This document shows positions 4,601-56,422 of a DNA stretch of 64,000 nt, in pieces; position 1 is the stretch's first letter, and every line of letters begins with the position of its first letter. The stretch covers positions 25,420,001-25,484,000 of the forward strand of contig NW_027361737.1 in the NCBI RefSeq assembly GCF_039654945.1, given 5' to 3'. Both the position numbers and the translations under genes were made by a program. The notes beneath the pieces were generated by a model that had not been told where the DNA came from, searched no databases, and saw only the letters and a list, made by a program, of their open reading frames with translations. Origin of the DNA: Dendrobates tinctorius. Lineage: Eukaryota.

Positions 4601-6887
4601 GTTGTCGCTTCCATGGAAAAAGGACAGTTCCTAGCAATGAGAGTTCTCGGAAAGATGGTGGCTTTGATGGAAGCAGTTCCATTTGCACAGTTCCACCTCT
4701 GTCCCTTACAACATGCGTTGCTGTTAGCTCGGGACAAGAACCCGCTCTCCCTGGACCGTCGGATCCTTCTGTCCCTGCGGGTTAGGCAAGCCCTCAGGTG
4801 GTGGACACTGAGGTCCTCCCTGATTCAAGGGAGGTCTTTTCTCCCAGTAAGAGGGTTGATAGTAACCACCGACACAAGCCTTCTCGGCTGGGGTGCGGTC
4901 TTTCGTCACCACACCACTCAGGGTCGTTGGCCAACCCGAGTGTCTCATCTCCCCATCAACATTTTGGAGATACGAGCGCTCATATTAGCTCTACGGAGTT
5001 TCCACCAACTCCTCGCGGGTCACCCTATCAGTATCCAATCCGACAATGCCACGGCTGTAGCGTATATCAACCGCCAGGGAGGTCCCCCGGGGCAGGATGG
5101 CCATACACGAAGTGAGTCATCCTCCATTGGGCCGAGACCAACCATTGGCCCATCTCAGCAATATACATCCCGGTCGTAGAAAATTGTGCGGCAGATTTTC
5201 TCAGTCGCCAAGGCATTGCCTCGGGAGAGTGGCCTCTTCATCTGGAAGCCAGTGATACTAGTTGTGCCAGATTGGCCGCGCCGAGCATGGTAGGCAGAAC
5301 TAATAAAACTAGTCCCCGACGTCCCCTGGCGACTTCCAGATCGCATGGATCTACTCTTAACAGGGCCCAATTTACCACCAGAACCCCGGGGCCCTGTCTT
5401 TTGACGGCGTGGCCGTTGAATCCTGGTTTTTCACACAGGCTGGGTTCTCTCATGACGTGATTTCCACCATGATTAGTGCTAGGAAACCTGTGTCCATGCG
5501 CATCTATCACCGCAACTGGAAAGCCTTCTTTTCGTGCTGCAGGGATCAGGGTCGATCCCCTCTGATGTTTTCCATTTCGGACATATTGGGATTCCTTCAA
5601 TCCGGATTAAAGTCAGGACTCGCGCTTAGCTCGCTCAAGGGCAAAATTTCAGCCTTGTCAGTGCTTTTCCAATGCAAAATTGCCACCAAACTTTAGGTCA
5701 GAACGTTCATTCAGGGAGTCTCCCATGTAGCGCCTCCTTATAGAAGGCTATTGGAATCATGGGACCTTAATCTGGTTCTCGGGGTCTTACAAGACGCTCC
5801 TTTCGAACCACTGCAGGATGTGTCACTGACCGTCTTCTCTTGGAAGGTGGTTTTTTCTTGTGGCAGTTATGTCAATTAGACTAGTTTCGGAATTGGCGGC
5901 CCTGTCCTGCCATTCTCCGTTCTTGAATTGTCATCAGGAAAAGGCAGTTCTCAGGACGTCCCCGTTCTTCCTGCCCAAAGTCGTCCCCTCTTTCCATATC
6001 AACGAGGAAATCGTTTTGCCTTCCTTTTGTCCTGCGCCAGTCCATCACATTGAGAAGGCCCTCCACACCCTGGATATGTTTAGGGCTCTGAGATGGTACA
6101 TCTCGCGGACAGCTCCCTTCCGCAAGTCAGATGTCCTGTTCATACTTCTTGAGGGGCATAGGAAGGGTCTAGCCTCTTCAAAAGCAACGCTAGCCAGGTG
6201 GATTCGTTTGGCAATTCAGGAATCCTACCGTGTCAGGAACGCGCCTGTCCCAGCATGGATTAAGGCGCACTCTACCCGGTCAGTGGGCGCCTCTTGGGCC
6301 ATTTGGCACCAGGCCTCAGCAGTACAGGTCTGCAAGGCTGCGACTTGGTCCAGTCTGCATACTTTTACCAAACATTACCAAATTCATTCTCGGGTCTCTG
6401 CGGACGCAGCTCTTGGCAGACGCATCCTGCAATCGGCAGTACCTCAGCGTTGACTCAGTGGTACATGGGGTATTATCAAAAGTATGATCCCCATCCAGGG
6501 ATGGCTTTAGGACGTCCCACGGTTTCTGTGTCCCCCAATGAGGCGTAGGAGAAATAGGGATTTTTGTGTACTCACCGTAAAATCCTTTTCTCCGAGCCAT
6601 TCATTGGGGGACACGGCACTCACCCTGATTAGCCTACTGGCTCATTGTAGCATTCTTAGGTTGTGACATAGTTATTGTTGACTGTTTAAGCTCCTACTGC
6701 TTTTTTCACTGAACTGGAGAAATCTCATCCAGCGAGAGGGTGTATACTGCAGGGGAGGAGCTAACTTTTTTTCTAGTTTACTTAGTGTCCTCCTAGTGGC
6801 ACGCAGTATAACACCCACTGTTTCTGTGTCCCCAATGAATGGCTTGGAGAAAAGGATTTTACGGTGAGTACTCAAAAATCCCTATTT
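1667..6887 (+). mobile_element. DIRS1-type tyrosine-recombinase retrotransposon, defective (copy 1)
   Basis: Inverted terminal repeats ~1667-1808 and ~6710-6838 plus a right extension to ~6887. ICR at ~6516-6614 is complementary to both ends. Gag-like ORFs 2726-4200, RT/RNase H remnants 4499-5179, YR remnants 5409-6453 (HSTR..W..HY). Many stops and frameshifts. Confidence 0.93.
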
Positions 6888-12549: not shown

Positions 12550-14733
12550 GTATGTGTGTAGTTTTAATAGGAGTGAGGGGATCATGCATACCAGGATTGG
12601 GGGATGACAGGACCATGCATACCAGGTGTCATGATCCATGCTGGATCATGACAGATGAAATGCACTAGTAACCTTTTTTTTTTCCTTAAAGCTGTGGTGC
12701 TTAGATAGTTTTGCCCCCCGGTGGCCTTTAGGGTCATTGCACTGTGGTGGTTTCAGTTCTAGTTTTGCCCCTGGTGGCCGTTAGGGTCATTGCACTCTGG
12801 TTTCTTTAGTTTAGTGCATGTGATTATAAAGCAGGTGTGATTGCTCTGGCTCTGCTATAAAAGAGTGTCAGGTGTTGCAATCACTGTTGGTGATACTGGT
12901 CATTTCCAACCATCCTTGGTGGAGGAAGGAGCTAGAGAGAGTTCCTTGCAGCACAGAGTCCTGGTGTGGAAGGAGTCACAGGGGATTTCCTTGCAGCTCT
13001 GACAGAGCTTGGTTGCAGCTATTCAGGAGGAAAGCTGCATTCTGGTGGTGGAATCTGTTGCTGGGAGCAATAGCAACAGAGCAAAGCTAAGTAGTGTTTC
13101 CCTGTTTGTATTTTTCCCTGGTGTGTATTAGTACAGCGGTGGGGCCAGTGCCTGCACCACCAAGCTCCCTAGCAAGGGATAGGTGTAGGGTGTGCTAGGG
13201 TCACAGGTTCCGGCTCGGCGACAGGTGAGGAACCTGTATAGGGAACGTTAGGAGTGTTAGGGACTCTGACTCAGGGGAGTGCAGGAGGTCTCCACGTCCC
13301 CGTTCCTATCGCAGGGGCCACCGTTGTAACTGTTTCCCCTTCCCCCTTGTCTTGTTGTTTTAGTTACCGGCCTGCAGGTCGTGTCCCACAGGACCGGTCC
13401 ACGTGACACCAGGATTGGGGGATGAGGGGTACCATGCATACCGGGATGGGGGGGTGAGAGGACCATGCATACCAGGATTGGGGGATGAGGGGTACCATGC
13501 ATACCAGGATTGGGGGATGAGGGGTACCATGCATACCAGGATAGGGGGTCATACATACCATGATAGGGATGAGGGAGTGCCATGCATACCAGGATTGGGG
13601 GATGAGGGGTACCATGCATACCAGGATAGGGGATGAGGGGTACCATCCATACCAGGATAGGGGGTGAGGGGACCATGCATACCAGGATAGGGATGAGGGC
13701 GTACCATGCATACCAGGATTGGGGGATGAGGGGTACCATGCATACCAGGATAGGGGGTCATACATACCAGGATAGGGATGAGGGAGTACCATGCATACCA
13801 GGATTGGGGGCTGAGGGATACCATGCATACCAGGATAGTGGGTGAGGGGACCATGCATACCAGGATAGGGGGGGGGGTGAGAGAACCATGCATACCAGGA
13901 TTAGGGGATGAGGGGCACCATGCATACCAGGATTAGGGGATGAGGGGTACCATGCATACCAGGATTAGGGGATGAGGGGTACCATGCATACCAGGATAGG
14001 GGGTGAGGGGACCATGCATACCAGGATAGGGATGAGGGCGTACCATGCATACCAGGATTGGGGGATGAAGGGTACCATGCATACCAGGATTGGGGGATGA
14101 GGGGTACCATGCATACCAGGATGAGGGGTACCATGCATACCAGGATGAGGGGTACCATGCATACCAGGATGAGGGGTACCATGCATACCAGGATGAGGGG
14201 TACCATGCATACCAGGATGAGGGGTACCATGCATACCAGGATGAGGGGTACCATGCATACCAGGATGAGGGGTACCATGCATACCAGGATGAGGGGTACC
14301 ATGCATACCAGGATGAGGGGTACCATGCATACCAGGATAGGGGGTGAGGGGTACCATGCATACCAGGATAGGGGGTGAGGGGTACCATGCATACCAGGAT
14401 AGGGGGTGAGGGGACCATGCATACCAGGATAGGGGGTGAGGGGACCATGCATACCAGGATAGGGGGTGAGGGGACCATGCATACCAGGATGGGGATGAGG
14501 GAGTACCATGCATGCCAGGATTGAGGAGTGATGGGACCATGCATACCAGGATGAAGAATGGGGTGCCGTGCATACCAGGATTGGGGGGGGGAGTGAGGGT
14601 ACCATGCATACCAGGATAGGAAAGAGGGGTGCCATGCGTATCAGGATAGGAGGGTGGCAGCACATACCAGGATGGGAGACCATATACCAATTAAAATGCT
14701 CGCCACCCGGGCGTAGAACGGGTTCATAGCTAG
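12550..14733 (+). mobile_element. Helitron-like non-autonomous element made mostly of a variable-unit minisatellite
   Basis: Units with core ACCATGCATACCAGGAT (21-31 bp) run 12570-12626 and 13409-14680. The 3' end has hairpin CCCG..CGGG then CTAG|T at 14730-14734. The 5' end is not sharply defined. Confidence 0.6.
12627..13408. mobile_element. Solo LTR (782 bp, probably Gypsy type)
   Basis: TGTCATG...CGTGACA termini with 5-bp TSD CCAGG (12622-12626, 13409-13413); interrupts the minisatellite. Confidence 0.85.
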
Positions 14734-20680: not shown

Positions 20681-22712
20681 TAACTTTAGATAGATTTTTT
20701 GTCCAAGAATAAATGTGGATTGTTGTTCATGGGGGGGAAAAAAGACATCCCCTGAAAATAAGCCCTAATTCATTTTTCGGAGCAAAAAATAATAAAAGGC
20801 CCTGTCTTATATTCAGAGAAACACAATATACTTTTATTGCTCAGAATACAGTATGCAATAACAATGTAAAGTAATAAAATAATAAAATGTAGACACACCG
20901 TGGTACTGATATATAAATTTGATGCATCGATCAAAAAGTAATTTTGAGCCTGTATTGTGAGACTGTTGTTCTGTTCTGACTCCACAGCATCCATTACCTC
21001 CTTGTAAATGTTTGTTTTTTCAATAATTTTTTGAAATTCTTAGAAATAATAATCTGATGGGGCCAAATCAAGACAATATGGCTATAGGTCGCCAATTTCA
21101 AAGCTGGTTTCATTGAGATGTTGCAGGACAATGAGACTTGTGAACGAGCGCATTATAATGCAAAAACAAGACTTTTGTTTAACCCCTTTACCCCCGAGGG
21201 TCGTTTGCACGTTAATGACCGGGCCAATTTTTGCAATTCTGACCACTGTCACTTTATGAAGTTATAACTCTGGAACGCTTCAACGGATCCTGTGGATTCT
21301 GAGACTGTTTTTCGTGACATATTGTACTTCTTGATAGTGGCAAAATTTCTTCGGTATGACTTGCGTTTATTTGTGAAAAACACGGAAATCTGACGAAAAT
21401 TTGGAAAATTTAGCAATTTTCCAAATCATCTAGTAGTGCAGTGATCCTATTGACACATGTGCCTCTAGAGTTTTATACCACTGAGCGGTGAAGAAAGAAT
21501 AAATTAGCCTTAGTGGTAAAAATGTATGTGCCCACGTATGTTGAAAATTCCTGACTAAAAACCGGACTCCTTCCAAGGAAAAACGCTTTTTTTTTATTTG
21601 CGCGCATTTTTTTTACGCGTTTTTTTCCGGAGCATCCACATTCTCATAGAATATAGTTGGAAATGCATTTTTTTTCCACAAAACTAATGAACATGCTGCA
21701 TTTTTTTCCCGCAATGCGTTTTTTTTCCGCAAAAAAAATGCATCATGTGCACAAAAATTGCAGAATGCATTATAAGAATGGGATGCTTAATGTATGCGTT
21801 TCTAGGCGTTTTTGCATGGAAAAAACGCAAAAAAAGCTTACGTGGGCATACAGCCTTAAATTTAGTTTTAGCTCCAGATTTAACATTTTCACATAAGTGG
21901 GTAAAAATGTCACCAAAATTTGTGGAACAATTTCTACTGAATATGGCAATACCCCATATGTGACTGTACAGTACTGCTTAGCCATACGGAGAGACTCGAG
22001 AGGGACGGAGCGCTATTTGCCTCCTGGAGTGCAGATTTTCCTAGAACAGTTTGCAGACTCCATATACAGAGCCCCTAATTGCTAGAAGAGCAGAATCCCC
22101 TTTCAAGTGACCCCATTTAGGAAACTATACCCCTTGGGGAATTTATCTACAGGTGTAGTGACAATTTTGACTCCATGGGTATTTTCCAGAAACAAGCAGC
22201 AATGAATGTTGCCGAGTGAAAATTGGAAGCTCTCGCTGTAGCCGCCAGTGTGCTATGCTCAGCCTGTGCTTCTGGAGGCATACACCCATAAGTTAAGCGA
22301 GCTGTCATCGCTTCAGAAATGTCGTTCCGCGTGTGGTAAAATTGATAAGGCAGTTTTATTTTTCGGGTCAGTATGATTACAGCGATATCACATTTATAAC
22401 GTTTTTTATGTTTTGGCGCTTTTATACAATTAAAACTATTTTATAGAAAAAATAATTTTTGCATTGCTTTATTCTGAGAGCTATTACTTTTTTATTTTTC
22501 CGTTGATGGATCTGTATGGCGGCTTGTTTTTTTTGCGGGACAAAATGACGTTTCAGCTGTACTATGTTTATTTATATTGATCTTTTTGAATGCTTTTTAT
22601 TCCACCTTTTGTTCGGTGGTATGATGATAAAGCGTTGTTTTTTTTGCCTTGTTTTTTATTTATTTTTTTATGGTGTTCACTAAAGGTGTTATCTAGTTGG
22701 CACCCTACAACT

Positions 22713-23428
22713 TGCCAAAGATCTGTCCCCACCATCCTACACTGTGCCAAAGATCTGTCCCCACCACCCTACATCGTGCCAAAGATCTGTCCCCACCACC
22801 CTACATCGTGCCAAAGATCTGTCCCCACCACCCTACATCGTGCCAAAGATCTGTCCCCACCACCCTACATCGTGCCAAAGATCTGTCCCCACCACCCTAC
22901 ATCGTGCCAAAGATCTGTCCCCACCACCCTACATCGTGCCAAAGATCTGTCCCCACCACCCTACATCGTGCCAAAGATCTGTCCCCACCACCCTACATCG
23001 TGCCAAAGATCTGTCCCCACCACCCTACATCGTGCCAAAGATCTGTCCCCACCACCCTACATCGTGCCAAAGATCTGTCCCCACCACCCTACATCGTGCC
23101 AAAGATCTGTCCCCACCACCCTACATCGTGCCAAAGATCTGTCCCCACCACCCTACATCGTGCCAAAGATCTGTCCCCACCACCCTACATCGTGCCAAAG
23201 ATCTGTCCCCACCACCCTACATCGTGCCAAAGATCTGTCCCCACCACCCTACACCGTGCCAAAGATCTGTCCCCACCACCCTACACCGTGCCAAAGATCT
23301 GTCCCCACCACCCTACACCGTGCCAAAGATCTGTCCCCACCACCCTACACCGTGCCAAAGATCTGTCCCCACCACCCTACACCGTGCCAAAGATCTGTCC
23401 CCACCACCCTACACCGTGCCAAAGATCT
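22713..23428. repeat. 32-bp minisatellite, ~22 copies
   Basis: Unit TGCCAAAGATCTGTCCCCACCACCCTACA(T/C)CG. Confidence 0.95.
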
Positions 23429-26049: not shown

Positions 26050-29049
26050 TTAACCCCTTCATGACCTGGCCATTTTTGGCAATATTGACCAGTGTCCCTT
26101 TATGAGGTAATAACTCAGGAACGCTTCAACGGATCCTAGCGATTCTGAGACTGTTTTTTCGTGACATATTTGGCTTCATGTTAGTGGTAAACTTAGGTCA
26201 ATAATGTTTGCATTTATTTGTGAAAAAAACGGAAATTTGGCAAAAATTTTGAAAATTTCACAATTTTCACATTTTGAATTTTTAATCCGTTAAACCAGAG
26301 AGTTATGTCACACAAAATAGTTAATAAATAACATTTCCCACATGTCTACTTTACATCAGCACAATTTTGGAAACAAATTTTTTTTTTTGTTGGGAAGTTA
26401 TAAGGGTTAAAAGTTGACCAGCGATTTCTCATTTTTACAACAAAATTTACAAAACCATTTTTTTTAGGGACCACCTCACATTTGAAGTCACTTTGAGGGA
26501 TCTATATGGCAGAAAATACCCAAAACTGACACCATTCTAAAAACTGCACCCCTCAAGCTACTCAAAACTACATTCAAGAAGATTATTAACCCTTCAGGTG
26601 CTTCACAGCAACTAAAGCAATGTGGAAGGAAAAAATGAACATTTTAATTTTTCCAATAAAAATTTTCTTTTAGCATCAATTTTTTCATTTTTCACATGGG
26701 CAACAGGATAAAATGGATCCTAAACTTTGTTGGGCAATTTCTCCTGAGTACACCGATACCTCATATGTGGTCATAAATCACTGTTTGGGCGCACGGCAGG
26801 GCTCAGAAGGGAAGGAGCGCCATTTGACTTTTTGAATGGAAAATATGCTGGAATTTTTAGCGGTTGCCATGTCGCGTTTGGACAGCTCCTGTGTGCCTAA
26901 ACATTGGATCTCCCCCACAAGTGACCCCATTTTAGAAACTAGACCCTCCAAGGAACTTATTTAGATGCATAGTGAGCACTTTGAACCGCCAGGTGCTTCA
27001 CAAATTGGTCCGTTAAAAAAAAAAAAGGACTTTTTTTTCACACAAATTTTCTTTTAGCCTCAGTTTTTTCATTTTCACATGGGCAATGGGATAAAGTGGA
27101 TCCTAAAATTTGTTGGGCAATTTCTCCTGAGTGCACAGATACCTCATATGTGGTCATAAACCACTGTTTGGGCACACGGCAGGGTCCCGAAGGGAAGGAG
27201 CACCATTTGACTTTTTGAATGGAAAATTAGCTCCAATCGTTAGTGGACACCATGTCGTGTTTGGAGAGGCCCTGTCTGCCTACACTTTGGAGCTCCCCCA
27301 CATATCACCCCATTTTGGAAACTAGACCCCCTAAGGAAGTTATCTAGATGCACCCGCTATCCTTTATTTTCACAGTAGTAACTGGAGAAATTTGACCCCA
27401 AAAGTTATTGTCCAGTTTGTCCTGAGTACGCTGGTACACAATATGTGGGGAGGGACCACTGTTTGGGCACACGTCGGGGCTCGGAAGGGAAGTAGCGACG
27501 TTTTGAAATACCGACTTGATGGAATGGTCTGCGGGAGTCATGTTACGTTTGCAGAGCCCCTGATGTGGAAACAGTGGAAACCCCCCACAAGTGACCCCAT
27601 TTTGGAAACGAGACCCCCCAAGGAACTTATCTAGATGTTTGATGAGCACTTTGAACCCCCAAGTGCTTCACCCAAGTTTATAACTCAGAGCCGTGAAAAC
27701 AAAAAAAATCATTTTTTTCACAAAAATCATTTTTTTAGCCCCCAAGTTTTTATTTTCCCAAGGGTAACAGGAGAAATTAGACTCCCAAAGTTGTTGTGCA
27801 ATTTTTCCTGAGTACGCTGATACCCCATATATGGGGGTAAACCACTGTTTGGGCACACGTAGGGGCTCGGAATGCAGAGAGTGCTGTTTGACATTTTGAA
27901 CGCAAAATTGGCTGGAATAAATCGTGGCGCCATGTCGCGTTCGGAGACCCCGTGATGTGCCTAAACAGTGGAAACCCCTCAATTCTAACTCCAACTCTAA
28001 CCCCAACACAACCCTAACGCCAACACACCCCTAACCCTAATCCCAACTCTAACCCTAACTACAAGCCTAACCCTAACCCTAATTCCAGCCCTAACCCTAA
28101 TTCCAGCCCTAACCCTAATTCCAGCCCTAACCCTAATTCCAGCCCTAACCCTAATTCCAGCCCTAACCCTAATTCCAGCCCTAACCCTAATTCCAGCCCT
28201 AACCCTAATTCCAGCCCTAGCCCCAATTCCAGCCCTAGCCCCAATTCCAGCCCTAGCCCCAATTCCAGCCCTAGCCCCAATTCCAGCCCTAGCCCCAATT
28301 CCAGCCCAATTTTTTTTATTTTATTATTTGCGCCTGGCTATGGGGGTGATAAAAGGGGGGTGTATTTACTTTTTTTTTCATTTTGATCACTGTGAGAGTG
28401 TATCACAGTGATCAAAATGAAAAATGAACGGGCAACCGGCAAATTCATGGGCGCCGCCATCTTGGACAATGGCAGGCGCACTGCGCATGCGCCCGCCATT
28501 TTGCAAGATGGCGGCGCCCATGATTCGGACGCCGGGAGCCACGGCGGGACACCGGGAGCACGATCGGAGGTCCCGGGGGATCGGAAGGTGGGAGGGAGCG
28601 ATAGGAAGGGGAGGGGGAGCAGATGATGACGGCGGCGACCGATCGCCGCCGTCCATCGGTGGCGGGGGCCGATCGGTCCCGCCAGTTGGTGTGTGGGGGG
28701 GTCGGGTGTTGGTGTCCAGCCATGTCCGATGCTATTGCAGCATCGGCCATGGCTGGATTGTAATATTTCACCAAATTTCATTGGTGAAATATTACAAATC
28801 GCTCTGATTGGCTGTTTCACTTTTAACAGCCAATCAGAGCGATCGTAGGCACGTGGGGGCTAAGCCACGCCCCCTGGGATTAACTGTAGAGTGTCCTCTG
28901 TGTGCGGGTCGGGTGACCTTTCAATGACCCCGGTCACCCGACCCGCAGGGGGGCTATTTATAGCATGACGCCTAAGTAGGCGTCATAGGTCGTTTGGGCA
29001 CGACTTTTCATGACGCCTACGTAGGCGTCATGGGTCGTGAAGGGGTTAA
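26050..29049. mobile_element. Non-autonomous TTAA-target DNA transposon (3 kb)
   Basis: TTAACCCCTTCATGACC ... GGTCGTGAAGGGGTTAA; internal degenerate tandem blocks and a telomere-like array. Confidence 0.8.
27985..28308. repeat. Telomere-like 18-bp repeat (CCCTAACCCTAATTCCAG)n inside the transposon
   Basis: Direct reading; the unit changes to CCCTAGCCCCAATTCCAG in the last copies. Confidence 0.9.
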
Positions 29050-29439
29050 AGAAGCACTCCCATTCACATTTTTTCCCCATTAATTCTGTGTATATGTGCA
29101 CATATTGTAGTGTATTGATCTACTCACCTACCGCCCCCTCCTCCAGTATTCAGTGCCGTCCTGATCCTCTTATCAGTGATGTGACCTCTCATCAGACTAA
29201 CTGACTCACTCTATGCGTGAGCCGGAAGTCTCTCTTACAATGTAAGCCTATGGAGGCTCCTTCTGTCATTCTGTAGGCTTGCGTTGTACAAGCCACTTGC
29301 CTGTCACGCAGAGCGCAGTGTGACCCGAAAAGTCTGCAGAGAGATGACGTCATTAAGATGAGCAGAATGGTGCTGTGTCCCGGAGAGAGACTTGGTATTT
29401 GAGCATATTAATACACTCATACTACACAACATATACAGT

Positions 29440-30825
29440 GAAAACCAAAAACAAAGCACAAAACAAATATCCTGGAATAAAAAAGTAAAAAAATATATTG
29501 CAAAAATTGCATGAAGGTAGTAATAATAAGGGTATTTAGTTAACATAATTTTGATCAAAATAATGTAGAAGCCATCCCGCCACGTCACGGCAACCCTTGT
29601 GGGACAGTCCTAACTCTTGTATTTAAAACCTTTCCACTTGTCAAGTGACGTAAATGTGAACAAGGACAGAGGGACTGAACCACCAGTAATAGTATAGGCC
29701 AGACAGGATGGATTTTCCAACTCAGAAACAGGGCGGTCACACCCTTATATGCACAGAATGCACAATGAAACAAATGAGAAACTGGGTCTGAGCAGAAAAA
29801 GTAAATTAATGTGCATGCAAAATGTAATTGCATATGAACACATGACCTTTACACAGAGAAAACCAAAAACAAAGCACAAAACAAATATCCTGGAATAAAA
29901 AAGTAAAAAAATATATTGCAAAAATTGCATGAAGGTAGTAATAATAAGGGTATTTAGTTAACATAATTTTGATCAAAATAATGTAGAAGCCATCCCGCCA
30001 CGTCACGGCAACCCTTGTGGGACAGTCCTAACTCTTGTATTTAAAACCTTTCCACTTGTCAAGTGACGTAAATGTGAACAAGGACAGAGGGACTGAACCA
30101 CCAGTAATAGTATAGGCCAGACAGGATGGATTTTCCAACTCAGAAACAGGGCGGTCACACCCTTATATGCACAGAATGCACAATGAAACAAATGAGAAAC
30201 TGGGTCTGAGCAGAAAAAGTAAATTAATGTGCATGCGAAATGTAATTGCATATGAACACATGACCTTTACACAGAGAAAACCAAAAACAAAGCACAAAAC
30301 AAATATCCTGGAATAAAAAAGTAAAAAAATATATTGCAAAAATTGCATGAAGGTAGTAATAATAAGGGTATTTAGTTAACATAATTTTGATCAAAATAAT
30401 GTAGAAGCCATCCCGCCACGTCACGGCAACCCTTGTGGGACAGTCCTAACTCTTGTATTTAAAACCTTTCCACTTGTCAAGTGACGTAAATGTGAACAAG
30501 GACAGAGGGACTGAACCACCAGTAATAGTATAGGCCAGACAGGATGGATTTTCCAACTCAGAAACAGGGCGGTCACACCCTTATATGCACAGAATGCACA
30601 ATGAAACAAATGAGAAACTGGGTCTGAGCAGAAAAAGTAAATTAATGTGCATGCAAAATGTAATTGCATATGAACACATGACCTTTACACAGAGAAAACC
30701 AAAAACAAAGCACAAAACAAATATCCTGGAATAAAAAAGTAAAAAAATATATTGCAAAAATTGCATGAAGGTAGTAATAATAAGGGTATTTAGTTAACAT
30801 AATTTTGATCAAAATAATGTAGAAG
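29440..30825 (-). mobile_element. 3.3 x 418-bp tandem non-coding insertion with a 14-bp TSD (retrozyme-like)
   Basis: Period 418 (repeated ORFs at 29585/30003/30421). ACAACATATACAGT at 29426-29439 and 30826-30839. It interrupts a MITE whose uninterrupted relative is at ~48567-48969. Confidence 0.85.
29528..29607 (-). ncRNA. Candidate HDV/CPEB3-like ribozyme fold (also at 29946-30025 and 30364-30443)
   Basis: Hand fold: P1 CUGUCCC/GGGAUGG, P2 AAGGGU/ACCCUU, P3 GCC/GGC, L3 GUGACGU, P4 ACAUUAUUUU-GAUC-AAAAUUAUGU, J4/2 CUAA. The +1 C and the first G of L3 are non-canonical. Confidence 0.55.
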
Positions 30826-32487
30826 ACAACATATACAGTATATATACTATTAATGTAAAAAAGCCTGTTCATGGTAACATGAACCTCAGTACTTGGGAGC
30901 AGCCACTTCACAGAGCACAGTGATGGCGTCCTGGCTCAATACATTGCTGATGGTGATGGTGCATGCTGTTGAACCCTTATTTTCTGATATTGATTACCCA
31001 AGTCCTGCACAACCTCTTCAATATTCACTAGTTGGATTGTACTGCTATAGAGTTCATCTGATCACTGGGGGTCCTGACAAGGGGGCACTTTCTGATACTT
31101 TTATTGCTATCGTGCTTTCTAGCAAGGGATTGTCGAAAGTGGGGATATTTTGTGAATGCACATTGCCCATATGTTGCATTTGTGAATATATACAGCATCT
31201 TTATAAGATATATCTGTGTGCACCATGTCTTGACGTCTGTGCGCAGGACAGATGCTCGTACAAATTGGCCCCTGATAACTTACCTGTGGGACAAAATGTT
31301 TTTGGATTTTTAGTTGGTGACCGTAGCATTGATGATGGATGCACCACCAGCTGGCCACATTGGCCCTACTCTTCTGATAATAAAGGGACTTTTCAGTGCT
31401 GTAATTGGCTGAGGCATCTGATATCATAAACGTTGATCGATGTATTCAGGATTTCTATTACATTTCCTTGACATCTCCAGCATTGCTGAAGGGCAGTTTA
31501 CTTCATGGCACACTGCTTTCATTCTTCTCTACAGTTTATTTAGTGCCTTAACTGCATCCACTTTTCATAAAGAAAATGTGTGATGTCTTGTTTTTCTGAA
31601 GATGAATATAATATTACTTTTATCTCTACAATCAGGGAGATCGATCCATTACAACCGTGCAATATCTAAATGTGTAAAAGTGGATGAGCGTGATTACATT
31701 ATAGCCTGACCAGTCACGACGCATGGACATCAGCCTATGTCTGCAGAAGACGCAGCATAATAGTAGTTGGCTGGGCTGTTTCCTGAAACTCGCAGTATGT
31801 GGTGATTGAGAAAAAAAAAATCACAAAGCCTTTCTAAGGCCAAGTTCTCACGGGGCAATTTTGCTGCAGAAAGTTGCTTTAAGGGAGTTTTCAAAGTTCA
31901 GAATAAAAAATGTGACCAATGCGGGAGAGTGAAGGTGGGGGAAGGAGTTCTTTATTACAGAACAAGAAAAAACAAGTAATGCTGGACATTTCATGACGTG
32001 CCACCAATATGTGGGACCCTGCCCTCAACATCTCTGTTAATTAGTGCATTAATCAGTATTTGTAGATAAATCAGACAGTTATATACAGGTTTTTTAAACT
32101 GGACATCATCATCTACTTTGATGTTTTGTACAAGGCTTCTTTTTGGCTGGGAGCTCACCATCAAGAACAGGATGAGCTTTTCCGATTGTTCATATTCATG
32201 TCAAATTTAGCACATTTAGAAATTAATACTCCATTGTCTCATAACCCCCTGCTTTACGCCAAAGTAATAATTCTGTTGTGGGGCACATTTTATTAATCTT
32301 TGTGCCAGATTTTAGGGCTTTTGTTTTCTTCTTTAAATGTTGAATTTTTTTTACTCTAAATCTCCCTCAGTAGGTAAAAATAAGTATCTCTAGGCATACA
32401 TAAAGACAATGTTATCATACCCTCCTCTCACTGCAACTTTATCCTTGAAAGTACCGCATGTGAGACACTTCCCCTAGTGAATGAGCC

Positions 32488-36705: not shown

Positions 36706-37337
36706 TTACTCTCCAAGTCCAGTCTCACAGATTTGAAAGGTGTCCCCTCTTTGCCCGTTGGCACAGACTTCCAGCTCAGTTCTGTAGGGCTGTCTGTGCG
36801 AGGCTTGTGACAATTCAGGGAGTGGATGGCCAAATGTTTCCATACAAATGCGATAGCCTCCTTCGGGCCGACGTGTTAGACATGGTGCAAAGCGGTGTCC
36901 TTGAAGTATCTCACTTGGTAGATAAGACGTACGGCTCTGGCAAATTTCCCCTGAGCCTTCCTGAGTAGCAGAAAGACAGACCACAAGCTCCAAGTGACCT
37001 GACAAAGATATTGTTTCACGCTGCGATAAAGCGGCTAGTGGGCTCCCAGGAGAGAGACTATGAGTGTACGTGAGAGGAAAAGAGAAGAACGGGCACTCGC
37101 CACTGCCATTTTGATAGTCCAACAAAAAGTCCACGCTGCTTTGCTGGATTTGGCCATCACCTCTCTCTTGGTACAGAATCCCACTGACTTTCACCATGGT
37201 TAATGGACTTGGGCGGGTGTTGGCCACTTGGAACATTAGACATGGCTTTCCTTCCGGACTGCCCACCACCGCCAGCCTCGAGAAGAGGATTGACGGAGTA
37301 CGATTCTTTGGTCTTGCAATTTTTGCCACAAAAACAC
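36706..37337 (-). CDS. KCNJ13: KCNJ13 (Kir7.1) last coding exon
   Basis: ttttcaacag|GTGTTTTT; [13 protein letters not shown]...RTSYLPSEI...[10 protein letters not shown] matches the Kir7.1 C-terminus. Confidence 0.97.
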
Positions 37338-37466
37338 CTGTTGAAAACAAAATCTGGAATAAGTGAAAACACGCATATGCAAAGCTGGAATAATATATGT
37401 ATGATATTATTTATAACCTCTTGCAACACATACTGCTTTTGTCACTGTAATCTGGGAATATCTGAC

Positions 37467-37958
37467 CTGTAATGAAGGCCTCCAGCATGAGTCCGAGCAA
37501 CATTTGCACAGCAAGAAGAGCGATGGCGCTTGGGCAATCTCCGCTTGGAAACATGGTGCCGTATCCAATGGTGAGCTGAGTCTCCAGCGAGAAAGAGAAG
37601 GCAGCAGTGAAGCTAGTGATATATTTCACACAAATGGTGTGATTCTCAGGTGGGGCATCATGGTCCAGGGCCAGATCGCCATTCATTTCAGCCAGAAGAT
37701 ACCAAAAAACAGCAAAAAGGAGCCAGTGTGCCAGGAAAGAAGCCGAAAAAGCCAACATCATCCAGCGCCAGCGCATGTCGAGCAGTAGCCCCCAAATGTC
37801 ACGCAGGTATGACAGTCCCTGCCCCTGGATCCTAGCAGCTTTTATGGTGCTGTGTCCATCTTTAGTTACAAGTCGATGAGAGCCAGCGTTGAGTAGGGTA
37901 CACCTAGGGGACCTGCTGTGAGAATCCTCCTCTCGATCTGTGCTGACCTGCAGCACCA
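37467..37958 (-). CDS. KCNJ13: KCNJ13 (Kir7.1) main transmembrane exon
   Basis: [10 protein letters not shown]1 helix, pore [13 protein letters not shown] with the Kir7.1-diagnostic Met after GYG, M2 helix. Acceptor ttgtttcag at 37959, donor gtcaga at 37466; 129-nt intron to the next exon. Confidence 0.97.
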
Positions 37959-38740
37959 CTGAAACAAAGAACAAGCCTACATCAAGTCCTGCTCATGAGC
38001 GTTCATTATATTTTTTACATAAATACAGTATTAAATGTTTCCCAGTAGTAGTAGTGAAAGTATTCTAAGTCCACTTATTTATTATAAATATAAAGACTAG
38101 CAGCACCGCAGAATGTCTATGCTGAGTTGTAGGGGAAAATTACAGACAAGTATTGTTGAAATTATGTGGCTGGTCTATGCTACCGGCAGCGTGACCACTG
38201 CAGCAATCACGTGCTGTACTGCTGCCATCATCGCCCAGAGATTGGAGCCAGGATGCCAGCGGTACGTCACATGACTGCTGGCTGGGGCAATGATTGGCTG
38301 CAGCGGTCGCAATGCTGTCCGCTTGTAAACAAAGACTAAGTGGATCCCAGGAGTAAGTATGCGGTATCACTTTTAGAGATAATAGATGAGATTTCTTGCT
38401 TTGTTTTTTTACAATACTGCTGTCTGTTTTGTAAAAAAAAAACAACAAAAAAATTGGAATATTGGATAGCACCATTTATTTTTTTAAATGTATTGATTTG
38501 ACAACTCTATAGAGAGGTAATAAAAAGTAAATAGTGCTACATGAGGAACACTGAGGCAAATGGTCTTACTCTTATATTACCTATTTACTCTTTCAATGTA
38601 TTAAAGGGACTTTCTCATGAAAGGCATGAGCTGGGAAAATGGGACCCCCTGTATGTGTAATCAGTGGGGGTTCCTTTATATAGGTGATAATGTCGTTCTT
38701 GGAAAAAACCCTTTTAGCATACATGAGTAGAATAAAGTAA

Positions 38741-47779: not shown

Positions 47780-49123
47780 GTGAGCACTGTATACAAATAT
47801 ATAAGCAACAAGTGACTGATCAATACTTTCCATAGGTGTCTGATCTGTCAGCGGTGGGTGTTCTGCAATAATGTGCCAATCAGTTTTTAATGTAGGGGTC
47901 CATGTTACATAAGGACATAATGGAGCAATAAGCAAACTGCTGTTTAGTGCTGACCATGAGATCTGGGTTTCATCAGACCATATGCACACTGCTGTTGGTG
48001 CAGTTTTTTGTGTATTTGTATTACAAGAGCTTCCTTAAGGGCATCTGGATATCTTTGTGGCTTGTTGCTCAGGTCATATTTTTTTTTACTGTCCTGCTGC
48101 CAGTTATAATGCAGTCTGTTCTGACATTCTGTAAAATATTCCAAATACCTTGATTCATCCATTCGTAATTACCATTAGAGGGGTTGTCTCATCTTAATAA
48201 ATGCATAAAGTCCTGGTAAGAACAAGCAGCTCTTGTTTGAGATCCTCTGTTTCTCCAAAACAGAGATTTTTCATTCTATAGTTTACAGTGTGTGGCCTAG
48301 GTTACCGTCCACTTCTGCAGTCTATCAGAGGTGGTTGGTTTCCTAAGCAAGGAGTGCTTCTTGCATGCTCTCTGCTTTAGAGCTTACATGTGCTGCTCTT
48401 ACATCCTCTGATGATACAGAACCAGAGCTGCCTCTACTAACAGCATGATCGTTTGTAATCATTGGAGCAGTGATTCCTCTGGACCAAACTGTCAATCTAT
48501 AGGAGCTCAGTATCCCCCAGGAAGAGGAGTGGCGTGTTCATGAATAAAGATTAAAGAGCCTCATTATTAAAGCACTCCCATTGATATTTTTCAGTTTAGT
48601 GTGAGTGTATTAATATACTTACCTACTGCTACTCTCCCCAGGATCCAGCGTCGTTCTGCTCCTCTTCTCAGTGGCATCACCTCTCTTCAAACTCTCTGGT
48701 TCACATTGTGCTCTGCATGACCCAGAAATGGCTTTTACAATGTAAGTTTATGTGGTGTCAGAACGAGCCTCCATTGGCTTAGAGTGTAAAAGAGACTTCT
48801 GATTTGCCCATCGAGTGAGCCACCTAGTCTGATAAGCAGTGACCTCCCAAGAAGAGGAGCAGAATGGCGCAGGACAATGGAGAGAGTGGAGGTAGGTGAA
48901 TATATTACCGTAATACAATCACACTGCACACATTTTAATGTAAAAAAAAATATGGGAGAGCTTGTTTAACCTTGAAATGCTTCTTACTACATTTTCATTA
49001 CGACGGCCCCTGTCCTGTCTCCTTCTATTGGACGAAGTAGAGTCACAGCAAATTCTGGCTTTTAGCCCGGCAGACTCTGCCCATCCATTTATTACATATA
49101 TTTAGATGGATGGTATCTAATAA

Positions 49124-52028: not shown

Positions 52029-53108
52029 TGGTATGTAATAAAACATTCCAGTGGGTGCAGTAGGGGAGATGGTGCGAGATTCATCTCATGATAACAGCTG
52101 ATGCTTTGTTGCCCTGAGTACAAGTAACTCATGTAACCTCCCCTTCAGACTGGGAAACTACATTTCCTCTAGACACCCTGTGTCTTGTCCTCTTGTGTGC
52201 TGCCGACAATGTTCTCCTTTACACCTTCTCTGCATAGGTGCAGTGGCATACATTTATCCAAAAACATTGGACATTTTTTAAAAAAAATCTGCTCTAATGT
52301 TAATTTCCAGGACGTCCACCTGACAGCACCATGGAGGACGTCCTCCTCCTCCTTACAGGGACAGGAAGCACACGAGAGGTTAAAGGTCACGTCCCACCCC
52401 CTCTCCCTCAGTGTTTTTCCTGTCCCTGCATGGAGGGACACACGAGAAGCTTACCGGAGGGGCTCAGGGGATCGTACGGCTAGTCCAAGCCTTCCCCTGT
52501 CAAGAGGTCCCGGGGCCGAAACTCTCCAGTGGGGAGTCCCTCTGCCCCAAAGGCCAGGAGCAGGACGACGCTCCTGGAGGGAGCCGTTCCTCCCTATGGG
52601 AGGCTCTCAGCTCCAGAAACTCACCGCCACGGCAGGTGATGGTCGGCTCCCCGCAGGCGGCTGGCCGGGCGGGGACGACTGGCGCAGCGGCGCTGGGAGG
52701 CAGGAATGAGGCCTCCGCAGTCCGCCATAGCAGGCGAAGAGGCCGGAGTGGCAGTCCGCCGCAGATGGACGGGGGTTGCCTCCTCACGGCGGCAGGCCAG
52801 AGGAGGCCGCCATAGTCGCGCGCAGAGCAGGAAGTGGAGGAGGCGGCCTAGCGCGAGAGGCCGCGCGTCACTTCCGGTGACGTCAGACGCCGGCCTTTGA
52901 ATCCCAGCGCGCGCTTCTGAAGCCAGACAGCGCTTGCTACTGAGGCCGGACAGCGCTCGCTATTGAAGCCACACAGCGCTCGCCACTGAAGCCACACAGC
53001 GCTCGCCTCTGGGGTCCACAGCGCGCGCTCCTAAGGCACAGAGCGCGCTTCTGGAAGATCCAGGGAGCACGCTTCGGAGGTCCATAGCGCCCTGCGGACC
53101 GCGCCAGG

Positions 53109-54361
53109 ATGGAAGGGGTCGCTCCAGCAGGCGGAGGGGTAAGTGCGCATAGCGCAGACCACCCTCCCCCACCCATTACCCCAACCCAGATCTGAATAGG
53201 TGCCCCTTCTGTATTATTAGGAGAAGGGAGCCCCGACAGAATCCCCCTCGGGGGCGAAGGACCCGGCAAAGGCCACCTCCAAATCGGTCAAATGCCCAGT
53301 ATGCAGGGTAAAGCTGCCAGACGCATATAACAAGACCCTATGCGGACCCTGTACCTCAAGGGTCGTAGTCGAGGAACAGCCATCCCTCCTAGCCGAAATG
53401 AGATCGCTGATAAGGGAGGAAGTTCGGGCCTCTACATCCAGCCTCGCACGGCGTCAGTCCCCCCAGCCCAGGGCCGAGTCGCAAACGTCCGAGGTGGGAA
53501 GCGGACCCAGAGTCGGAAGAAAGCCCTAGTGAGGAGTCCGAATTCCGGGATTCGGATCAGGAAGAAGGCGAGATCCGGGGGGATAGACAAGATCAGAACA
53601 GGAAATACCTATTCAGACTGGAGGACACGGACGAGTTGGTCCAAGCAGTCAGAAATACTATGCAGATAGAGGAGGTCCCTAAACCACAGTCCAGGCAGGA
53701 CTTAATGTTCGGAGGACTGGTGGCCCGGAGACAGGTAGTGTTCCCTGTAAGTGAACACATCAAAACGATGGTCCAGGAGGAGTGGAAGGAGGCAGAGCGT
53801 CGACTGTCACTCTCCCGAGACTTTAGAAGCAGACTGCCTTTTGATCCTGAGGAAACCCGGGCATGGGAGGAAATTCCTAAAATAGATGTCCCAGTCGCTA
53901 AAGTTACCAAAAAGACGGCTATCCCATTCGAGGACTCATCAGGTCTTCGAGACCCGATGGATAGGAAGGCAGACGTCTTATTAAAAAGAGCGTGGGAGAC
54001 GTCGGCGGCTCTTATTAGGGCCAACATAGCAGCCACCTCGGTGGCCAGGTCTATGTTTTTGTGGATGGGGCAGTTGGAAGAGCACCTAACCAACAAGACC
54101 CCTAGATCAGACATCCTAGCATCCCTTCCGCTCATGAAATCGGCTATGGCGTTCCTATCAGATACGTCGGCCGAATCGGTAAGATTTGCAGCCAGAAACA
54201 GCTCCCTCTCCAACGCGGCCCGAAGAGCAGTCTGGCTCAAATCCTTGTCGGGGGACAACGCTTCAAAAACTAAGCTATGCGCCATCCCCTTCTCGGGCCT
54301 GAGGGTATTCGGGCCAGCCCTAGATAACATTCTAGAGCTGGTGTCCGATAAAAAGAAGTGA
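53109..54361 (+). pseudogene. DIRS ORF1 (gag-like; Cx2C..Cx2C at the N-terminus), predicted spliced, one frameshift near 53460-53510
   Basis: ATG 53109, intron 53139-53220, then KCPVC..LCGPC; continues into the track ORF 53636-54361. Confidence 0.7.
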
Positions 54362-54607
54362 TTCCCGGAGGAAAAACCCAGACGGCCCCAGTCCTTTCGG
54401 AGAGGCTCCTTTTCTAGGAGGCAGACCGAGTTCAGGGGTTGGGCAAGGTCCAGTAGAGGCTCCTATAAGGGCTCCTTCAGCCAGACCGGAAGGGACAGAG
54501 GTCCTCCATTCACATCAACCTCTAGATCGAGGAGGCAATGACGCCATAGGTATTGGGGGGAGACTTCGCCACTTCGCAACAAACTGGTCCAGAGTCACCC
54601 ACAATCA

Positions 54608-56422
54608 GTGGGTCCTCAGAACCATCACGGAGGGCTACAATATAGAGCTTTATTCACCTCCCCCCGAAAGATATATTACCCCCACTGTCGTCCTGGAGGA
54701 CTCCGCAATGTGGACGGATCTACAGGACATGGTAAAATCAAAGGTCATAGTACCAGTTCCCCGTCAGAAAGAGGGAAAGGGCACTATTCGTCCCTGTTCG
54801 CGATCACAAAACTGTCTGGCGAGGCCCGTACCATCATAAACCTGAAACCACTAAATGCCTGGGTCAAGTACAAGAGATTCCGGATGGAATCGGTCCGATC
54901 CGCAACCCTCCTGATAGATCGGGACGCCGTCATGTGCACCCTAGACCTAAAGAAGGCCTACTACCAGGTCCCTATCCATCCCTCTTCCCAGAGACTGCTA
55001 AGGTTTGCGGTCAGTTTACCAGCCCGGACCTGCCACTTCCAGTTCCAGTGTCTTCCATTCGGGTTGGCCTCAGCTCCCAGAATCTTTACAAATCTGGTGG
55101 GAGAAGTAGTGGCCTACCTGAGAGATCAGGGTATTGTGATCATACCCTATTTAGACGACTTCCTACTGGTGGCAAGATCCAGGGAAGCGCTTGTTCGCGA
55201 CAGAAACCGAGCAACTGCGGTAATGGAGTTCCTTGGATGGGTGATAAATTGGGAGAAGTCGAACATCAGGCCAGAAACCAGGAAAATATTTCTCGGGGTC
55301 CTCCTAGACTCAACCGACAGAATATCCTGGCTACCCGAACAGAAGCAGAGGACTATTCAGACCAGAACCAGAGACCTGTTGAGACGTCAGTGCTCCATAA
55401 GAGAGGCAATGGAGGTCCTGGGCCTCATGACGGCCTGCATCCAGTGTGTCCGATGGGCCCAATTCCACTCAAGATCACTGCAGAAAGAGATCCTTGCGAG
55501 GTGGGACAGAAGTCAGGCGTCGCTAGACAGACCCCTAAGGCTGCCAGAACGAGTAAGAGAGCCCCTTCGGTGGTGGACACGGTCCAGAAACCTTCAGGTG
55601 GGCGTATTTTGGACAGCCTCTCCATACGTGGTAGTCAACACGGACGCCAGTGTGTGGGGTTGGGGAGCCCACATAGAAGGGAAAATCTTCCAGGGGAGAT
55701 GGCCAGTAGACATCAAGACCAGATCCTCCAATTTCAGAGAACTCTACGCGGTCTGGGAAGCGCTACGGCGGAACCAGTCGATACTAGAGAATCGTCATGT
55801 CCGTATACTATCCGACAATATGACGACAGTGGCATTCCTGAAGCACCAGGGAGGGACCAGACATCAACCACTACAGGACCTAGCGGGAAAAATATTCACT
55901 TGGGCAGAAAGAACAGTCCGATCAGTGACCGCAGTACACCTAGAGGGTTCCCAGAACGAAGTAGCAGACTACTTGAGCAGACAACGGATCCGCCCGACAG
56001 AATGGGAACTGAGCGAAGAGATCTTCAACCATCTCTGTCAGCGTTGGGGGACCCCCAGTATAGATCTCTTTGCAAGCCGAAAGAATTTGAAAGTCCCCAA
56101 ATTCTATTCCCTGAATCCGACGGACCACCCAGAAGGTGTGGATGCCCTGAGTCAGACCTGGGGAGAATCCCTCTCCTACGCATTCCCGCCACTGGCCCTC
56201 ATACCGGCAGTGCTCAGGAAGATACGCGAGGACCACGCACGAGTGATGTTTATCGCTCCATACTGGCCGAAGAGAAGCTGGTTTCCCCTTCTAGGAGCCA
56301 TGGCAGTCGGAAATCCAGTCGAGCTACCCCTGTGGAAGGACATCATCCACCAGGGCCCGATCTACCATCCAAACCCAGCGAGACTTCATCTATCGGCTTG
56401 GATCCTGAGAGGGACATCCTGA
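54608..56422 (+). CDS. DIRS RT-RNase H-methyltransferase-like ORF (true N-terminus in another frame)
   Basis: LPFGLASAPRIF, YLDD, TDAS..RELYAV..SDN, IDLFAS, YAFPP. The upstream IGGRLRHF..W..WVL segment joins after restoring one C near 54760. Confidence 0.9.
   Translation: MGPQNHHGGLQYRALFTSPRKIYYPHCRPGGLRNVDGSTGHGKIKGHSTSSPSERGKGHYSSLFAITKLSGEARTIINLKPLNAWVKYKRFRMESVRSATLLIDRDAVMCTLDLKKAYYQVPIHPSSQRLLRFAVSLPARTCHFQFQCLPFGLASAPRIFTNLVGEVVAYLRDQGIVIIPYLDDFLLVARSREALVRDRNRATAVMEFLGWVINWEKSNIRPETRKIFLGVLLDSTDRISWLPEQKQRTIQTRTRDLLRRQCSIREAMEVLGLMTACIQCVRWAQFHSRSLQKEILARWDRSQASLDRPLRLPERVREPLRWWTRSRNLQVGVFWTASPYVVVNTDASVWGWGAHIEGKIFQGRWPVDIKTRSSNFRELYAVWEALRRNQSILENRHVRILSDNMTTVAFLKHQGGTRHQPLQDLAGKIFTWAERTVRSVTAVHLEGSQNEVADYLSRQRIRPTEWELSEEIFNHLCQRWGTPSIDLFASRKNLKVPKFYSLNPTDHPEGVDALSQTWGESLSYAFPPLALIPAVLRKIREDHARVMFIAPYWPKRSWFPLLGAMAVGNPVELPLWKDIIHQGPIYHPNPARLHLSAWILRGTS

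Follow-up and report, generated by a model that had tools for sequence, protein, structure and literature searches.

Newt satellite 2 and Schistosoma Sm-alpha are transcribed tandem repeats with units of ~330 bp that carry self-cleaving hammerhead RNA. [quoted passage not shown] PLE insertions occur as partial or multicopy head-to-tail arrangements and as head-to-head inverted copies with palindromes at their junctions, flanked by short TSDs, and PLEs are able to mobilise non-coding passengers in trans (PMC8557442, PMC3846280). The TSDs of A. vaga PLEs are 8-10 bp long (PMC3846280), and head-to-tail non-autonomous Penelope-type multimers that have no hammerhead are known in Chlamydomonas (MRC1; PMC8557442). 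[quoted passage not shown] Here an array of 418-bp units at positions 29440-30825 of a 64-kb stretch of Dendrobates tinctorius DNA (NW_027361737.1, 25,420,001 to 25,484,000; hereafter the window, in whose positions all coordinates are given) is compared with these systems. The array is best explained as one recent retro-insertion of an abundant, non-coding mobile RNA with tandem units of ~418 nt, of minus sense and carrying a predicted HDV/CPEB3-type fold, a reading to which we assign a probability of roughly 0.6.

Array structure and target-site duplication

Tandem Repeats Finder reported a period of 418, 3.3 copies and 99% matches at 29435-30825, and an exact base-by-base comparison delimited an insert of 1,386 bp (29440-30825), or 3.316 units of 418 bp arranged head-to-tail. 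Units 1 (29440-29857), 2 (29858-30275) and 3 (30276-30693) are full and unit 4 (30694-30825) is a partial unit of 132 bp. The sole difference between units was found at 30237, where unit 2 has a G and units 1 and 3 have an A (29819 and 30655). The unit has a GC content of 37% and is A-rich on the plus strand; its longest open reading frame (ORF) was 87-94 amino acids, none exceeded 94 amino acids, and no homologues were found of an 82-amino-acid ORF within it. An identical 14-mer, ACAACATATACAGT, abuts the array on the left (29426-29439) and on the right (30826-30839), and the chance of such a match abutting the array on both sides is ~4^-14. A preliminary description of this locus, made from the letters of the sequence, had reported that a non-coding unit of 418 bp is repeated head-to-tail 3.3 times, with a single substitution and a perfect 14-bp duplication at the borders, all of which was reproduced here. 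The array therefore shares with retrozymes non-coding head-to-tail units (418 bp), a GC content below 50% (37%) and a TSD longer than 4 bp (14 bp), and with PLE-type insertions a 5'-truncated head-to-tail structure, three full units and the 132-bp partial unit, together with the 14-bp TSD. The insert ends read GAAAACC on the left and GTAGAAG on the right, and no poly(A) or microsatellite tail was present.

The left junction was covered exactly by short-read contigs from run X1 (29023-29475) and from run X5 of another study (29228-29477), and the right junction by a contig of run X1 (30798-31400). No contig or read spanned the whole array, so the copy number of 3.3 is that given by the assembly alone. 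A contig joining 29439 to 30840, representing the empty site, was absent from the joints listed, which does not count as evidence of fixation. All four units have a G at 29456, 29874, 30292 and 30710, respectively, where nearly all other contigs of the family have an A. This near-private base common to the units indicates that a single template gave rise to all of them, or that one unit was copied from another.

The insert interrupts an older repeat resembling a miniature inverted-repeat transposable element (MITE), the left part of which occupies 29060-29425 while the remaining ~34 bp lie beyond the insert at 30840-30873. A second MITE-like copy (48594-48925) has 58-nt terminal inverted repeats with 79% complementarity. 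Its part at 48594-48905 shows 71% identity to the left flank (29104-29428), and the same figure holds for the copy against 29118-29427. Reconstruction of the empty site gave terminal inverted similarity from ~29060 to ~30873. Since this similarity ends at ~30873, only ~34 bp separate the insertion from the right end of the host repeat, and the second copy and the inverted similarity together bear out the earlier proposal that the array sits in an older MITE. Read depth on the left part of the host repeat was 15-70x the single-copy level.

Abundance and dispersal of the family

Contigs of four public runs were aligned to 28900-31400 at an identity of at least 85%. In the DNA run X1, 4,592 contigs matched this stretch at 85-100% identity, including 939 at 99% or above, and the summed word depth on the unit was ~1e5, compared to 6.8 on the single-copy right flank, although depth does not equal copy number. 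The depth and the spread of identities indicate that the family is very abundant and that its copies differ in age. Of the matching contigs in the three smaller, RNA-like runs, 17-42% continued into unrelated sequence, which places copies of the family in many contexts, and a related species yielded contigs ~93-98% identical to the unit. The dispersal anticipated in the preliminary description, as opposed to a single locus, was thus observed. Elsewhere in the genome two contigs join family copies head-to-head, one at the 24-nt palindrome of the unit (joint at 29564/29582) and the other at a smaller palindrome (29813/29834), while the array locus itself has no inverted copy and no tail of 30-40 bp. 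Pattern scans for the unit in metagenome and prokaryote genome collections, where host DNA may occur as a contaminant, gave no match, and neither did a comparison of its 16- to 19-mers with the text of published papers. The boundary of an X5 contig at 29854 was considered as a further insertion end and rejected as it looked like a diverged copy rather than flank.

A 101-nt contig of run X5 at 30177-30277 carried 15 differences from the unit, at least ten of which were A-to-G changes on the plus strand clustered at 30215-30240, and in the run overall there were 24 A>G changes vs 7 T>C changes. If X5 is an RNA run, this excess looks like ADAR-type hyper-editing of plus-sense double-stranded repeat RNA. 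The lone substitution of the array (A to G, 30237) falls in the same short stretch.

Searches for hammerhead and other known motifs

The CUGANGA core was absent from both strands of the unit, and a search of both strands of a unit dimer for the hammerhead core with helix II, allowing one core mismatch, returned nothing with either a descriptor or a regular expression. Rfam, including its HDV, CPEB3 and drz models, gave no match at E<=10 on segments of 2.7 kb, 861 nt or 106 nt, while the whole 64-kb window had no hit that reached the gathering score. These results agree with the earlier statement that there is no hammerhead. ARAGORN and Rfam found no RNA polymerase III head derived from tRNA, 5S or 7SL RNA, so the element has neither the head nor the tail typical of a LINE-dependent SINE. 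A Helitron was ruled out by the 14-bp TSD and by ends that do not fit 5'-TC...CTRR-3'. A DNA transposon and a DIRS-type circle integration were rejected on the same two grounds and because the number of copies is not an integer. Folding of the whole unit was unremarkable (z = -0.27 for the plus strand and -1.5 for the minus strand).

An HDV-like fold on the minus strand

The minus strand of each full unit is predicted to form an 80-nt double pseudoknot of the HDV/CPEB3 type, at 29528-29607 in the first copy with a predicted cut 5' of C29607, at 29946-30025 in the second and at 30364-30443 in the third. A truncated fourth copy (30782-30825, minus strand) keeps only the C of P1.1, P4, J4/2 and the 3' strand of P2. 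Numbered on the first copy and read on the minus strand, paired region P1 would consist of 7 bp between CUGUCCC (29607-29601) and GGGAUGG (29578-29572), P2 of 6 bp between AAGGGU (29598-29593) and ACCCUU (29533-29528), and P3 of three G-C pairs between GCC (29591-29589) and GGC (29581-29579). Loop L3 is the 7-nt GUGACGU (29588-29582), P1.1 a single pair of G29586 with C29571, and P4 the 24-nt palindrome of the unit (29566-29543), which would fold as a 9-bp hairpin with one internal U·U mismatch. The joining region J4/2, UAACUAAAU (29542-29534), holds the candidate catalytic C29539, followed by UAA. P1, P2, P3, L3, P1.1 and P4 thus come in the canonical nested order, L3 contains the G (29583), and in J4/2 a C (29539) precedes UAA.

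How often such a fold arises by chance was estimated with a compact descriptor of generic HDV type, which asked for a P1 of 7 bp, a J1/2 of 0-3 nt, a P2 of 5-8 bp, a P3 of 3 bp with at least two G-C pairs, an L3 that is 6-8 nt long, a single Watson-Crick pair in P1.1 and C.AA before P2'. It matched 12 of 3,000 dinucleotide shuffles of the unit, and 17 of 10,000 (0.17%) under the further condition that a P4 hairpin lie within 60 nt. On both strands of the window (128 kb) it matched only at 29607, 30025 and 30443, the starts of the three full copies. A variant contig from the related species has three base changes within the fold stretch, each compatible with the fold: the first base of L3 goes from G to U, an A-U pair of P2 becomes G-U, and a C.A apposition becomes a U-A pair that lengthens P2.

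The 5' strand of P1 has an alternative, distal candidate on the minus strand, CCAUCCU at 29705-29711, with six Watson-Crick pairs and one G-U pair to the same GGGAUGG (29578-29572). This would put the cut 5' of C29711, 104 nt upstream, and would leave a J1/2 of 105 nt; the same long-range helix also appears in the minimum-free-energy fold of the plus strand, and long J1/2 regions occur in R2 ribozymes (PMC3774820). A plus-strand HDV candidate starting from unit position 88 was rejected as chance, as it had the same helices in the wrong order. Two motifs resembling the cAMP response element (CRE) lie ~60 bp apart on the plus strand of the GC-rich core of the unit, CACGTCAC (29579-29591) and TGACGTAA (29641-29648), and the first overlaps P3 and L3 of the fold; speculatively, the pair may be an internal promoter element.

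Strand, insertion ends and proposed mechanism

The sense strand of the element is likely the minus strand of the window, which we infer from the strand of the fold, the microhomology at the left junction and the position of the minus-sense 5' ends, including those at the inverted joints. At the presumed priming junction (29432-29438) the target reads ATACAGT and the unit, just before GAAAACC, reads ACACAGA, so that ACAG is common to both and six of eight positions match. Such a microhomology is the trace expected from a nicked top strand annealing to RNA. The right end of the insert (30825, equivalent to 29571), which is its 5' end in minus sense, is the C directly after the 3' strand of P1 and falls 36 nt short of the end predicted from cleavage. 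This end (29571) and the head-to-head inverted joints at 29564 and 29582 all lie no more than 43 nt downstream of the predicted cut, with none beyond it. The minus-strand RNA that the preliminary description had foreseen is therefore likely.

If active, the fold would cleave multi-unit transcripts 5' of C29607 and of the corresponding base in the other copies, in the manner of the HDV-like ribozymes at the start of R2, RTE and L1Tc elements. An element-encoded endonuclease would nick the top strand after 29439, and the nicked 3' end would anneal to the RNA by the short microhomology and prime cDNA synthesis 168 nt downstream of the ribozyme start. Reverse transcriptase would copy three whole units, either from an uncleaved multimer, from a circle or by jumps between monomers, and would halt in the fourth unit within the folded core of the 5'-most ribozyme, while a second nick 14 bp upstream would produce the TSD. 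We speculate that only a correctly folded 5'-terminal ribozyme both cuts and blocks reverse transcriptase, and that misfolded internal copies do neither. The preliminary description had ascribed the non-integer multimer and long TSD to target-primed reverse transcription around a circular or multimeric RNA. Target-primed reverse transcription was retained as the likely source, but a circular template is not specified by the DNA, which is compatible with a multimer, a circle or monomer jumps as the origin of the three seamless unit joins.

Weighing of alternative explanations

Several observations weigh against a functional fold and the mechanism built on it. The compact descriptor was composed after the candidate had been seen, and looser descriptors that allow a long J1/2 match 34% of shuffles, native and shuffled sequence behaving alike. 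The energy of the nested fold (82 nt) is ordinary (z = 0.08), and the Rfam HDV and CPEB3 models found no match even on the 106-nt segment at E<=10. In the core, the cut-site pair is C-G instead of the canonical G1.U37 wobble, P1.1 is a single inverted G-C pair as opposed to the canonical two (C21-G39 and C22-G38), and the first base of L3 is a G instead of the U with which the conserved L3 G normally forms a reverse wobble pair (PMC3774820). An active HDV-like ribozyme with a single-pair P1.1 does exist in L1TcRz (PMC3185411). Neither end of the insert coincides with the cleavage site, as the 3' end is 168 nt from the predicted cut and the 5' end falls within the fold, 36 nt in; the RNA evidence consists only of contigs that match the unit, from runs of uncertain type, and a Penelope reverse transcriptase is absent from the 64-kb window, which holds only DIRS-like elements. 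It is possible, if rather unlikely, that the same retro-insertion took place with the fold as a chance look-alike or dead relic, in which case the element would be a ribozyme-less Penelope passenger like MRC1 and its tandems would have been made by reverse transcriptase alone. The blank Rfam result, the ordinary energy, the atypical core with its L3 beginning with G and the post hoc descriptor would all fit this explanation, as would the hammerhead-less head-to-tail PLE-type multimers already described (PMC8557442). It accounts poorly for a compact descriptor found with its P4 hairpin in 0.17% of shuffles and only at the array in 128 kb of real sequence, for the fold-compatible changes in the related species and for the clustering of insert 5' ends inside the fold. 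On balance, the fold is probably a real ribozyme-type module, and the view that the element would be without a ribozyme is probably wrong, given the predicted double pseudoknot on the minus strand of every full unit.

How the tandem structure arose and which enzymes were used can be considered together. Rolling-circle reverse transcription around a unit-length circular RNA has been put forward for hammerhead retrozymes (PMC7229834), and in the present case the circle would arise by HDV-like self-cleavage and ligation rather than through a hammerhead. This route would account for a non-integer multimer with seamless unit joins, for the near-private base common to all units and for an insert 3' end internal to the predicted monomer, an end that is compatible with a circle and with a multimer alike. 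The same DNA would result, however, if uncleaved multimeric transcripts were copied or if the enzyme jumped from one monomer template to the next, and a single monomer circle does not predict a G at 30237 in unit 2 alone unless this was a later change, so that we consider this specific route unlikely. It also seems improbable that the element is a SINE- or SIDE-like parasite of a LINE, with an HDV-like 5' ribozyme as in R2, RTE and L1Tc and with multimers made by template jumping. TSDs of 7-20 bp suit LINE endonucleases of the apurinic/apyrimidinic (AP) type and the 14-bp TSD is within that range. All described HDV-like ribozymes of retroelements are likewise in LINEs or their non-autonomous derivatives (PMC6765202, PMC7761336), but there is no poly(A) or microsatellite tail at either end and no tRNA, 5S or 7SL head, and head-to-tail together with head-to-head arrangements are the signature of PLE insertion. 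An origin at the DNA level, whether a staggered break captured a piece of satellite or of extrachromosomal circular DNA or unequal crossing-over expanded a 1.3-unit insertion, is very improbable. The abundance of the family would allow for satellite-like arrays among its copies, and near-identical units are found after recent local amplification, but a clean 14-bp TSD without filler marks endonuclease-driven retrotransposition and not break repair, and later expansion of a 1.3-mer, which may have occurred, would alter only the copy number and not the nature of the element. For a retro-insertion of a minus-sense tandem-unit RNA, we lean slightly towards a Penelope-type partner, since partial tandems, head-to-head inverted copies elsewhere in the genome and a 14-bp TSD make a Penelope-like supplier the most likely one, and we regard a LINE in this role as doubtful.

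Other features of the window

To the left of the host repeat (28365-29050), at least eight short hairpins that are unrelated to one another form a chain. Their arms are 16-36 nt long with 79-100% complementarity, their loops measure 4-23 nt, and one hairpin had a weak match to mir-942 (E = 0.08). The right part of the chain (28900-29067) is extremely abundant in the genome, with a depth of ~1e5. An interstitial telomere-like array is located further left at 28002-28307, where (CCCTAA)n decays into ~15 copies of the 18-mer CCCTAACCCTAATTCCAG. Minisatellites were found at 22701-23428 (a 32-mer in 22.8 copies with 98% identity) and at 13408-14650 (a G-rich array of 24-, 31- and 72-mers of ~1.2 kb).

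DIRS-like retroelements are located at 52185-57438 and 2936-6453. Their ORFs encode reverse transcriptase, RNase H and a Dam-type methyltransferase, with a weak tyrosine-recombinase match (54608-57438), and the second, broken copy holds LAP2alpha-like and RNase H pieces. A KCNJ13-type inward-rectifier potassium channel is encoded on the minus strand at 36709-37974, where one coding piece (37414-37974) holds the IRK transmembrane domain and a second (36709-37350) holds IRK_C.

Significance of the locus

The multimer at this locus is clean, very young and bounded by a perfect TSD, and its near-identical units preserve the sequence of a recently active template, which makes it suited to a cleavage assay and to finding the partner that supplies the enzymes. 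It also bears on how Penelope-type reverse transcriptases build tandems, with circular templates, multimeric templates and template jumping as the options. Units without a hammerhead would be missed by design in hammerhead-based surveys. In its most far-reaching form, which we put forward tentatively and consider rather unlikely as a whole, the family would be a vertebrate delta-type retrozyme with around ten thousand non-coding tandem units, in which an overlooked HDV-like variant, with C-G at the cut site and an inverted P1.1 of one pair, cuts the RNA to unit length and the product is circularised and copied in rolling-circle fashion by a Penelope-type reverse transcriptase. If this were true, the ribozyme module of retrozymes would be interchangeable and the tandem-insertion lifestyle independent of one ribozyme class, hammerhead-based surveys would have missed a whole class, and current censuses of amphibian retrozymes would be undercounts.

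Comparison with known systems

In the literature searched, an HDV-like ribozyme was described neither for tandem units of the retrozyme type nor for passengers of Penelope-type machinery, and the array shares a different set of features with each of the systems introduced above. Its units resemble those of newt satellite 2 and Sm-alpha in being tandem repeats of a few hundred bp with a self-cleaving motif, here a predicted one, but the motif is HDV-like rather than a hammerhead and the array is a dispersed, TSD-flanked insertion rather than part of a long satellite block. Like the HDV-like ribozymes of R2, RTE, Baggins, L1Tc and the R2 SIDEs (PMC6765202, PMC3185411, PMC3774820), the predicted fold has a double-pseudoknot architecture. 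Those of R2, RTE and L1Tc are located at the 5' ends of their elements, and those of R2, RTE, Baggins and L1Tc are present as a single copy per insertion in LINEs or deletion derivatives, whereas the array consists of tandem units; the array fold also differs in having C-G at the cut site as opposed to G.U, an inverted P1.1 and no detection by Rfam. With PLE insertions and non-autonomous Chlamys elements such as MRC1 (PMC8557442, PMC3846280) the array has in common 5' truncation, head-to-tail multicopies and a short TSD, and its family elsewhere in the genome includes head-to-head inverted copies with a junction palindrome as PLE insertions do. Unlike PLEs, the array has no reverse transcriptase or GIY-YIG gene, no sequence in common with an autonomous PLE was found within the 64-kb window, and the optional tail of 30-40 bp is absent.

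The likeness to non-LTR retrozymes extends to AT-rich units that are non-coding and a few hundred bp long, multimers in which several such units lie head-to-tail, a TSD longer than 4 bp, abundance in amphibians, one small self-cleaving motif per unit, which is predicted in the present case, and a mobilisation thought to depend on PLEs. The array departs from them in that it has no type I hammerhead, their defining feature, and in that its candidate ribozyme would belong to the HDV/CPEB3 class. The element is thus best read as a retrozyme-like repeat with a putative ribozyme of a different, already known class.

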